A DNA stretch of 64,000 bases from contig OZ116705.1 of NCBI GenBank assembly GCA_964199315.1, positions 23,870,001 to 23,934,000 on the forward strand, written 5' to 3'. Below the pieces are notes generated by a model. It was not told the origin of the DNA and ran no database searches. It saw only the letters and a list, made by a program, of their open reading frames with translations. The position numbers and the translations under genes were made by a program. The stretch comes from Orbicella franksi (taxonomy: Eukaryota). Position 1 is the first letter of the stretch, and each line of letters begins with the position of its first letter. Below, one piece after another: positions 31,301-32,917 of this stretch.

Positions 31301-32917
31301 CTGTCGATTATAAGACAAACTAGAACTAGAGTTGAAGAAGGCTAGCTTGCAACGGAAACCAGTGCAAGAGGAATATTTTTCCTATAAACCACCACAAGTG
31401 GATTGTTTTAATGCCTTTACCTGTATATACAATCAGACCTAACCTAAATTCAATCCAATCTTAAATATTCTTGATCGATTGTAACGTTTTAAAGTATATT
31501 CTCTCACCAGGCTTAAGAAAATCAGCCATACTGGGGAATGATGATAATTACTTGAGCACTTTAAGTACCTGGTTAAAACCTGTTATGCAAAGTAAATCTT
31601 CTCACTGGAATCGCTGTTGGCGGGCGTCGCTGGACGGCTGGGCTTCAACAAAGTTCCATTCACTTTGCAACAATAAAGGTCCATCTGTTACTATTATTCG
31701 TGTTGGACAGTACATCTTTGGTGGATATACTAGCGCTTCGTGGAGTAAGTGACATTATTTCCTTTACCTTTTCCTACATTTTCTTTTTTGAACAAAGCAC
31801 CTTGAATTATACCAACCATTTCTTAACATAATTTACAAATCTTGTAGGATAAATAAAGGTTTAATTTTTAGAAGGGAAGAAATGGCTTAGAGCAAATGTT
31901 TTCCATTTAGTTTCAATAATGATTAATTCCCGAATTGGCGAATGGTGGCGCAATAGAGGCAGTTTTGCCCCGTTAAACAATGAAATGTCAAACAGAGTTA
32001 TTTGCCTTTAGAGATGGCAGATTTCTATTGCATATTTTGGCAGCTTTCACTTAAAAGTTGAAAAACGTATAAACGGTTAAAGTGATGTGCAGCATTTTCC
32101 GCTTTCCCTCCTCCCCCAACGATAAAACAGAAGAAGAGTCTTTTGTAACTAAGGGATCGCTGAGCATTTTTGATCTCCTATGCCTTTTATCTAGATGACA
32201 ATGGTTACAAATTAAAATTTGTGTACCGATTGACTGACACAAGAGAGAGATAAATAGTATAACTGTGGAGTAAATTTAGCTTAGATGGGTAACGTAGATG
32301 ACGAACATTTTCACTGTTTCTGATAGATGCATGATAATAAACATGACGAGTGTTTAGGCAAATCTAATGATCTTCGAATATTAAAAATTACAGTATTTAA
32401 TTGCTATGAAGATCACAACGATTGAAACCGCAAATATTTAAATATTTTGTACTGTTATTCGTACATGAGTGCATAATAACCAGAATCGATATACATTTTC
32501 CATCCATTCTTGATTGTCTGACATCTTTTATTTTCTTTTCTTTTTTTTCTTTTTCCTTTTTTTTTTTTTTACTTATTAGCTTCCAGTGGTCAGTACTTGC
32601 CCAGTTCGACCGCTTTCATTTTCTCGCTGGTGAACAAGCCAGGCTGGGGACCAGTGACATTCAGGCCACCAGGAAAATATCATTCTTACCAACATGCTAC
32701 GTACAATGGCGGTGGTCATGGACCAACATTTGGAAGTGGACACGATTTTTACATTGCCCCATACGCCTCGTCCAACACAAATTCATACTCAAACCTTGGA
32801 CACGGCTACAGTCCACCAGCTGGTCACAGCTGCTGTTCCTCATTCACTCAATCATTCCTGGCGGGTAGTTATCACTTTCAGCCAGACGAGGTGGAAGTCT
32901 TCTACGAGAGTACCTGA
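10300..32917 (+). CDS. Gene copy A: secreted mosaic lectin (SP, 3x H-lectin-like, FOLN/Kazal, 3x H-lectin-like, CTL, EGF_CA, TLDc), ~1050 aa, 17 exons
   Basis: Exons 10300-10384, 11659-11804, 12720-12971, 15240-15404, 16538-16651, 24540-24665, 24794-24890, 25016-25234, 25805-26181, 26601-26768, 27145-27255, 27430-27549, 28924-29014, 29890-30264, 31084-31218, 31511-31744, 32580-32917. All introns are GT..AG with compatible phases. Total 3153 nt, one open frame. Confidence 0.85.
11659..24890 (+). CDS. Copy A exons 2-7: first triplet of H-type-lectin-like repeats
   Basis: Three repeats of the pattern C..(V/I).F...F...(P).V.VS..H......W.E.V....F.(V/I)CV.E......V.W.AF. The H-type lectin (HPA/discoidin/SLL-2 family) assignment is from pattern recognition only. 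Confidence 0.7.
13299..13828. mobile_element. MITE with a nested second repeat (~13457-13736)
   Basis: Imperfect inverted ends CTGGGTGGAGTGACTCCCATGTAAGAAGGAC / GTCCCTTTTATATGGGAATCCTCCCCCAG. Duplicated in copy B at ~39.93-40.46 kb. Confidence 0.5.
17860..18500 (-). pseudogene. Frameshifted Polinton/Maverick/adintovirus-type A32-like packaging ATPase relic (intron 5, copy A)
   Basis: Minus-strand pieces in shifting frames: EPHPEFMFRHEFSRFVVGSYQSG (decayed Walker A), WWQDRYEAMKSAIG, IEFFRGLP, VTIFDDLMAQA (Walker B), LFSQGRHSNSNIILLLQKLFAKG, MALFRSPNDRK. Confidence 0.75.
18551..18796 (-). pseudogene. C2H2-like zinc-finger ORF immediately upstream of the ATPase relic
   Basis: MPYKFKRDCSVCGKRDLLYSRDHLRQIH (CxxC...HxxxxH), same strand as the ATPase. 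Repeated at 46595-46840. Confidence 0.5.
18973..19700 (-). pseudogene. Degenerate ORF of unknown family, upstream of and co-oriented with the zinc-finger/ATPase relic
   Basis: Interrupted coding-like pieces (…GPFYILGAKHFQLFFGPLQASRRFV…; …IWMCTAFNISMPLWKETIIAGLCDL…MEEWLQ…). Repeated at ~47017-47745. Confidence 0.35.
21014..21902. repeat. Tandem array, ~189-196-bp unit, ~4.6 copies
   Basis: Unit starts at ~21015, 21211, 21400, 21589 and 21781 (AAGAAACAATTATTTTTATTCCTAGCAAAGTTTTAGGGGATTTCAAGG…). Confidence 0.9.
21931..22163. mobile_element. Fully palindromic MITE flanked by TA
   Basis: Arms of ~100 bp (GACCATTTTACAGTTGTCTGCTCAGTGAC… / …GTCACTGAGCAGACAACTGTAAAATGGTC) are near-perfectly complementary. 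TA on both sides. Confidence 0.8.
23044..23231. other. Assembly gap (188 N)
   Basis: Run of N. The corresponding stretch in copy B (48443-48554) contains an (ATT)n microsatellite. Confidence 1.
25016..25234 (+). CDS. Copy A exon 8: follistatin-N + Kazal module
   Basis: PCLNVYCPSFGVC…CVCYENCPSYQDPVCTSNGTTYDNKCLYELSYC…HPGSC, a ten-Cys follistatin pattern with Kazal PVC.SNG.TY.N.C. Phase 1-1 exon. Confidence 0.9.
25805..29014 (+). CDS. Copy A exons 9-13: second triplet of H-type-lectin-like repeats
   Basis: Repeats such as DKFKEAPVVLVTSEH…IWIEDTTKDSFQVCLRELQNFDG…V|NWLAF, paralogous to exons 2-7. Confidence 0.7.
28304..28699. mobile_element. CCCGGGGG…CCCCCAGG MITE in intron 12
   Basis: Imperfect G/C-run inverted termini with GGGGTTACTCCC / GGGAGTACCCC. 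Second copy at 53628-54023; related fragment at ~8690-8790. Confidence 0.55.
29890..30264 (+). CDS. Copy A exon 14: C-type lectin domain
   Basis: CDPGWSYFNGYCY…W..A...C…WLGFND…F.W.D…W...QPNN…EDCV…WNDVKC…YTC. Single phase 1-1 exon. Confidence 0.95.
31084..31218 (+). CDS. Copy A exon 15: calcium-binding EGF domain
   Basis: DLNEC…HCH..ATCTNERGSYTCTCNHGYVGDGFDC, the EGF_CA consensus. Confidence 0.93.
31511..32917 (+). CDS. Copy A exons 16-17: TLDc domain
   Basis: WRASLDGW...FHSLCNNKGPSVTIIRVGQYIFGGYT..SW / AFIFSL / GPTFGSGHD / FQPDEVEVFY, the TLDc hallmark motifs. Exons 31511-31744 and 32580-32917. Confidence 0.9.

Follow-up and report, generated by a model that had tools for sequence, protein, structure and literature searches.

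The stretch of the Orbicella franksi genome analysed here, 64,000 nucleotides long and hereafter called the window (G000:C8:23870001-23934000, in an assembly of 497 Mb), carries a tandem pair of coral genes, A and B, whose last exon encodes the C-terminal half of a TLDc domain. An earlier note, made from the letters of this DNA alone, had singled out a 30-codon block of that exon as hypervariable and almost purely nonsynonymous, and had read it as the product of diversifying selection on a ligand-contact surface. The selection proves to fall on individual codons, some inside the block and some outside it. Four copies of the terminal exon are placed in the window by tblastn, starting at 32582 (gene A), 57792 (gene B), 5587 (copy 0b) and 1832 (copy 0a), together with three fragments. 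The exons of gene A and the position of the block are as follows.

24994-25239, + strand: Kazal exon (profile match, E = 3e-7)
26460-26792, + strand: H-lectin-like exon (weak match, E = 0.0035, 17.9 bits against a cut-off of 24)
29856-30275, + strand: C-type lectin exon (profile match, E = 1e-16)
30966-31250, + strand: EGF exon (profile match, E = 4e-10)
31508..31744, + strand: TLDc exon 1, the N-terminal half of the domain (Pfam TLD, E = 1.3e-10, 41.9 bits)
32580..32917, + strand: terminal TLDc exon (Pfam TLD, E = 1.9e-7, 31.6 bits)
32675..32764, + strand: the 30-codon block, codons 32-61, between RPPG and ASSNTNSY

Both TLDc exons score above the curated cut-off of Pfam PF07534 (24.5 bits). 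The terminal exon is preceded by a polypyrimidine tract and an AG acceptor, opens with a split codon and continues for 111 codons from 32582 to a stop at 32915-32917. The presence of Kazal, C-type lectin and EGF modules points to an extracellular product. Contigs assembled from RNA runs match gene A over 32626-32788 and in the 3' untranslated region without mismatch, and another RNA contig links an upstream EGF-type exon to 31508, being mismatch-free over 31508-31609; the EGF end of the latter resembles that of gene B, not A. The junction from 31744 to 32580 of gene A itself was not seen among the RNA contigs, the sole joining contig carrying a different terminal-exon variant. This spliced contig (run X15) exits TLDc exon 1 at 31744 into a terminal exon that starts SGYQYSSSS and matches none of the four window copies, and therefore represents a further expressed allele or paralog, differing at the N-terminal codons that are identified below as hot. 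Coverage in the RNA runs extends to the TLDc intron, which means that they contain unspliced RNA or DNA, and the runs that contain the stretch include some labelled "coral metagenome".

The remaining copies that carry the block lie on the same strand.

57792..58127, + strand: terminal TLDc exon of gene B, the tandem paralogue of A (block 57885-57974)
56775-57008, + strand: TLDc exon 1 of gene B
56400-56564, + strand: EGF exon of gene B
55180-55599, + strand: C-type lectin exon of gene B
5587..5922, + strand: copy 0b, an orphan terminal exon with frame and acceptor intact (block 5680-5769)
795..2137, + strand: copy 0a, a pseudogene (exon 1 at 795-1028, terminal exon at 1832-2137)

The block sequences of these four copies between RPPG and ASSNTNSY are identical to those quoted in the earlier note, and the second variable patch that it described, HSCC, HSYR or HSYG, is confirmed at codons 82-85. 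Its description of them as four full-length variants does not hold. Copy 0a has an in-frame stop in TLDc exon 1, an acceptor changed from AG to AA and a replaced sequence after FQPD. Copy 0b is homologous to gene A only from 5531, 56 bases before its exon, and the window holds no TLDc exon 1 upstream of it; a protein from another public assembly (P0156) is near-identical to this copy. Intact genes carrying block variants are thus A and B only.

The tandem unit that A and B share measures about 26.7 kb, with 95-98% identity, and the 22-kb gene body is 95-99% identical between them. Toward the 3' end (30527-33310 compared with 55750-58535) the divergence climbs stepwise, from 0.5% over 30527-30950 to 5.7% over 30951-31507, 11.3% in the intron at 31745-32579 and 14.5% in the 3' flank, which suggests that the gene body has been homogenised and the TLDc tail has not. 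The block itself differs at 16/90 positions (17.8%), and when set against the pooled neutral proxy of intron and 3' flank (0.124) this is not an outlier (binomial p = 0.085). The idea of a hypervariable island at the nucleotide level was accordingly rejected, the flanks being equally diverged. What is unusual about the block is that nearly all of its changes are nonsynonymous, not its total divergence. The hand count behind the earlier note was right: A and B differ in the block by 15 base changes in amino-acid-changing codons and 1 synonymous change, the former altering 12 amino acids and the latter falling at codon 48. By the Nei-Gojobori method these become 14.5 nonsynonymous and 1.5 synonymous differences, with rates per site of 0.24 for nonsynonymous (dN) and 0.08 for synonymous change (dS), compared with a dN of 0.09 and a dS of 0.13 in the remaining exon. 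The block had been picked post hoc as the most variable stretch of the four window copies.

Selection was assessed in the wider family, which comprises more than 150 paralogous terminal exons in this genome, a number that is a lower bound. Forty of the nearest paralogs were codon-aligned and 36 of them were used in Goldman-Yang codon models on an IQ-TREE codon tree; L037-L040, which are joined by a very long branch, were excluded. A single ratio of nonsynonymous to synonymous rates (omega) for the whole exon was estimated at 0.72 (model M0). Models that admit a class of codons with omega above 1 fitted far better, with twice the log-likelihood difference (2dlnL) reaching 92 for M1a vs M2a and 79 for M8a vs M8; under M2a, 18% of codons fall at omega 2.7. 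The M7 vs M8 comparison that the earlier note had proposed as a check, run here with our own code, likewise favoured such a class (2dlnL = 106). An external set was assembled by protein search from nine exons of the same subfamily in other coral assemblies (P0151, P0159 and P0160 being left out of the codon set). These exons align gap-free over 111 codons, as do the four window copies, and they again favoured M2a over M1a (2dlnL = 24.9, p = 4e-6), placing 13.5% of codons at omega 4.0. That about 13-18% of the codons in the terminal exon have omega above 1 is a robust result. The scaffold, in contrast, is under purifying selection throughout the N-terminal half of the domain, in the strands, at GP(T/S)FG and at the glycine/His-Asp motif; the earlier note was correct that the core motifs GP(T/S)FG and (H/N)D are kept. 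The claim of diversifying selection therefore stands for individual codons, where site models, a tree-free test, the external set and a control on the neighbouring exon agree, and fails for the block taken as a unit.

This last distinction bears on the possibility of relaxed constraint, in which the loops tolerate any residue and drift neutrally while pseudogene copies inflate the variability. Over the block as a whole, the ratio of the proportions of nonsynonymous and synonymous differences (pN/pS) is 1.07 across 17 sister pairs and 0.96 across the pairs outside the window, while omega is 1.25 for the nine external sequences (p = 0.10), 1.39 for the 13 external and window sequences together (p = 0.011), and 2.9 (p = 1.5e-4) for the four window copies alone, the same data in which the block was chosen. 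A block-wide omega of about 1, a nucleotide divergence equal to that of the neighbouring non-coding DNA, and loops that vary in length are all as neutral drift would have them, as are the pseudogene 0a, the orphan exon 0b and a stop in exon 1 of a further paralog, L028. The average is low because the block combines two or three selected loops with a conserved core: about 8-11 hot codons lie inside it (32-34, 36, 42-46, 52 and 57), and about as many, equally strong, lie outside it (1-5, 74-75, 80, 84-86, 90 and 97-98). Neutral drift cannot raise omega above 1 at such codons. Models with omega up to 1 are rejected at 2dlnL of 73-92 among the paralogs and 25 among the independent sequences, and the same positions recur in separate clades.

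The tree-free test addresses the same codons through the 17 independent sister pairs, leaving one pair out at a time and defining hot sites as those with many replacements in the other pairs. In the held-out pairs, hot sites show a pN of 0.166 vs a pS of 0.106 (1.6x, p = 1.4e-5), while cold sites have a pN/pS of 0.43. Where the flanks could be aligned, in eight pairs, the pN of hot sites is 0.159 vs a non-coding divergence of 0.070 (2.3x, p = 6e-11). Hot sites defined on pairs from outside the window also predict an excess in the window pairs (p = 0.01-0.04). With cross-validated hot sites changing faster than both synonymous sites and flanks, we regard relaxed constraint as unlikely.

Quite unlikely, in our estimation, is a mosaic created by gene conversion, in which short tracts exchanged between paralogs would give clustered differences and a false signal of selection. 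Its grounds are real: the PHI test detects recombination or gene conversion among the paralogs (p = 0.005), the divergence between A and B rises in steps from 0.5% through 5.7% to 11-14%, and a DRGP(S/H)FG variant of the core motif occurs in several clades. Because of the PHI signal, four further controls were added to the analysis. With separate trees for three partitions of the exon, M1a vs M2a still gave a 2dlnL of 72.7. In 40 null simulations with recombination, generated on three different trees and each analysed on one re-estimated tree, the maximum was only 15.7. The pairwise tests described above are independent of any tree, and TLDc exon 1 of the same genes, taken as an adjacent-exon control in 24 paralogs, has an omega of 0.21 and a likelihood-ratio statistic of 0. 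Imported tracts would also bring synonymous differences with them, yet pS is not raised in the block. Finally, no near-identical donor for the blocks of A, B or 0b was found in the assembly, where the nearest matches are the other window copies at 80-87%, which argues against recent conversion from an existing donor.

Local hypermutation, by a mutational hot spot or a mutator targeted to the block, is very improbable. The changes are clustered, and many variable codons are of the form NAY (Tyr, His, Asn, Asp) and interconvertible by single first-position changes; but the synonymous divergence of the block, 0.08-0.25 among the window copies on small counts, is no higher than that of the exon remainder or the intron, family-wide pS is 0.094 in the block vs 0.109 elsewhere, and, as noted, total nucleotide divergence is no outlier. 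That synonymous divergence is not raised points to selection rather than to a mutational hot spot. An artefact of assembly or alignment, with collapsed or chimeric paralogs or misaligned loops, is hardly credible: the locus is a tandem array of similar copies, the window holds two N gaps and the wider family has loop indels, but independent RNA and DNA contigs reproduce the block of gene A exactly, copy 0b has its near-identical counterpart in another assembly, and the four window copies and nine external exons are gap-free throughout.

The selected codons of gene A fall into the following short patches.

32675..32689, + strand: hot patch 1, codons 32-34 and 36, a loop whose length varies among paralogs
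32705..32719, + strand: hot patch 2, codons 42-46, the beta6-beta7 turn and the most variable loop of the window's own subfamily
32735..32752, + strand: hot codons 52 (glycine loop) and 57, from site models
32801..32851, + strand: hot patch 3, codons 74-75, 80, 84-86 and 90, in the long beta9-beta10 connection and containing the HSCC patch
32870..32875, + strand: hot patch 4, codons 97-98, from site models

In the 36-paralog M2a fit, the posterior probability of the selected class is 1.00 at codons 32 and 36 and 0.80-0.89 at codons 33 and 34 in the first patch, 0.99 at codon 45 and 0.73 at codon 46 in the second, and 1.00 at codons 52 and 98, the last with a site-wise p = 0.001. Codons 32 and 36 stand out with partition trees too, and codon 52 remains above 0.9 with them; codons 52 and 57 both exceed 0.9 in the 13-sequence subfamily set. 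The external set assigns posteriors above 0.9 to codons 34, 43, 44, 45, 74, 86 and 98, and of 0.5-0.9 to codons 3, 32, 42, 52, 57, 75 and 90. At codons 42-46, 18 external proteins carry differing loops of 5-6 residues. In composition the hot sites are 24% Tyr, 20% Ser and 13% Gly.

DNA contigs from two other coral samples, whose match to the intron of gene A is almost perfect, differ from A in the exon by H34Y (32681), H46Y (32717), S52T (32736), Y69H (32786) and H74Y (32801), and an H74D variant is also recorded at 32801. The five named first are all nonsynonymous (5/5) and lie at or next to hot sites; H34Y would be either allelic or orthologous.

In runs X2, X9 and X16, two of these variants, H46Y and S52T, are common to DNA contigs of two differently labelled coral organisms. 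RNA from two organisms carries the reference allele, and in one of them H34Y is present as well, at partial depth. Judged from these contigs, the variants at 32681, 32717 and 32736 may be polymorphisms shared across species. An alternative to the core motif SYGPTFG, DRGP(S/H/T)FG, recurs in distant clades and in other corals; its carriers are the block of 0b (5680-5769), paralogs L019, L020, L021, L026 and L032, and proteins P0158, P0160, P0161 and P0169. Convergence, old polymorphism or micro-conversion could account for this recurrence.

The position of the hot sites was read from an AlphaFold2 model of P0001, a complete spliced homologue that is 66% identical, rather than of gene A itself. 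The model was built on a 42-sequence alignment with a predicted local distance difference test score (pLDDT) of 95.8; codon n of gene A corresponds to residue n+84 of P0001, and strands are named as in PMC8329711. The TLDc fold consists of two N-terminal helices and a pseudo-orthogonal sandwich of two antiparallel sheets (PMC8329711). This fold is present in the model: all 16 of 16 Foldseek matches at E <= 0.001 are TLDc domains or TLDc proteins in V-ATPase complexes (NCOA7, Skywalker, mEAK7, OXR2, Oxr1 and Rtc5p), and superposition on solved TLDc domains, among them those of NCOA7, Skywalker, mEAK7 and OXR2, gives TM-scores of 0.72-0.83, normalised to the target. In the model the block spans the beta5-beta6 loop, beta6, the beta6-beta7 turn, beta7, the glycine loop and beta8, a region that forms a small second sheet with its turns; the long beta9-beta10 connection holds the remaining hot sites. 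Of 15 hot sites, 11 are predicted to lie in coil. A HMMER alignment of the block to solved TLDc chains was not obtained, only the N-terminal half of the domain and the last strand aligning.

Three known systems resemble this family most. Known TLDc members are cytosolic, occur in single or low copy and have been studied as V-ATPase partners. The coral domain resembles those of OXR1/2, NCOA7, TBC1D24/Skywalker and mEAK7 in that both exons match PF07534, the modelled fold superposes, and the sequence keeps both the FGGG-type glycine loop and the C-terminal (D/E)-(V/I)-E-V-F strand. It differs from them in being the last module among domains of extracellular type and in its more than 150 genomic copies; the region from FLFSL to the last strand is, moreover, longer, holds the fast-evolving loops and is unalignable by sequence to any solved TLDc. 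Among the papers searched, none reports the pattern seen here, and none connects TLDc domains in this way with Acropora, extracellular lectins or positive selection.

The second system is LePin, which is to our knowledge the one lectin experimentally shown to bind algae and start symbiont uptake in a cnidarian. The soft coral Xenia secretes this lectin, which attaches to algae ahead of their uptake (bioRxiv 10.1101/2022.12.13.520278; PMC7332420), and LePin-like proteins have been described across anthozoans (bioRxiv 10.1101/2022.12.13.520278). The domain schemes of that paper show no terminal TLDc module, and its text never uses the term "TLD" (bioRxiv 10.1101/2022.12.13.520278). Gene A shares the Kazal, C-type lectin and EGF module types, and has an H-lectin-like exon whose match is below the cut-off; its predicted module set would fit the LePin-type body plan. 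The third system comprises the snail FREPs, the sea-urchin Sp185/333 proteins and the amphioxus VCBPs. Each of these is likewise a large family of tandem genes for secreted, lectin-like proteins, with positive selection at a few surface positions on a conserved scaffold. Here the coral case differs in that the variable module has another fold, TLDc, and that its diversity is germ-line, lying between paralogs and alleles.

The left end of the window, 770-7194, carries partial duplicates of the gene 3' end, and shorter pieces lie elsewhere.

770-2137: copy 0a
4655-4988: a degenerate fragment of intron and exon
5531-7194: copy 0b with its 3' flank
8293-8388: short terminal-exon fragment
34985-35080: short terminal-exon fragment

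Tandem repeats of about 190 bases, with copies 93-95% alike, occupy 21014-21902 in an intron of gene A. Beyond the window, paralog L028 (G000:C8:29884444-29887758) has an intact terminal exon and a stop in TLDc exon 1 (SSY*NRC), so the family includes recently dead members, and seven separate parts of a database protein of 1833 amino acids (P0002) match the terminal-exon query, which suggests that about seven TLDc domains follow one another in it.

Taken as a whole, the explanation that we consider probable is diversifying selection on TLDc loop codons of tandem coral lectin genes. The block is part of the last exon of a tandemly duplicated coral gene encoding a putative LePin-like multi-lectin, with predicted H-lectin-like repeats and Kazal, C-type lectin and EGF domains besides the TLDc end. 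In the C-terminal half of the TLDc domain, recurrent diversifying selection acts on about 15-20 codons. They are grouped in four or five short patches, for the most part loops that surround the second beta-sheet or belong to the long beta9-beta10 connection, and the selection is repeated across more than 30 paralogs of this genome and relatives from other corals. The patches would form an exposed recognition surface rich in Tyr, Ser and Gly. Duplication, point mutation and selection may have diversified its specificity, with the remainder of the gene kept nearly identical between neighbours, probably by gene conversion. A ligand-contact surface is a plausible reading of these patches, with a surface molecule of microbes or algae, or a partner from the host itself, as possible ligands.

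Several points weigh against this explanation. Beyond the four copies used to choose it, the block as a unit does not exceed an omega of 1 significantly, and two of the four variants first quoted are a pseudogene and an orphan exon. The codon models are our own code, with branch lengths fixed, and neither PAML nor HyPhy; the recombination detected by PHI inflates tree-based tests, and 25% of the null simulations exceeded the nominal 5% cut-off of 5.99. Hot sites are not significantly enriched in coil (p = 0.12), and since they occupy turns at either end of the small second sheet, the topology does not reveal a single contact face. The evidence from reads consists of short assembled contigs only and is a lead rather than a population test.

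More tentatively still, and with doubt prevailing, it is possible that reef corals have recruited the TLDc domain to form the variable tip, akin to that of an antigen receptor, of secreted LePin-type lectins encoded by a large germ-line family, in which Tyr/Ser-rich loops set which algal symbionts or microbes each paralog or allele recognises, with alleles maybe held across species by balancing selection. TLDc loops that have repeatedly been selected to change are concrete candidates for determinants of partner or pathogen specificity in corals, and the analysis names about 15-20 residues as targets for swaps or mutation in binding assays. We know of the TLDc fold only as a cytosolic V-ATPase partner; if the interpretation is true, the fold would gain a second, extracellular role.

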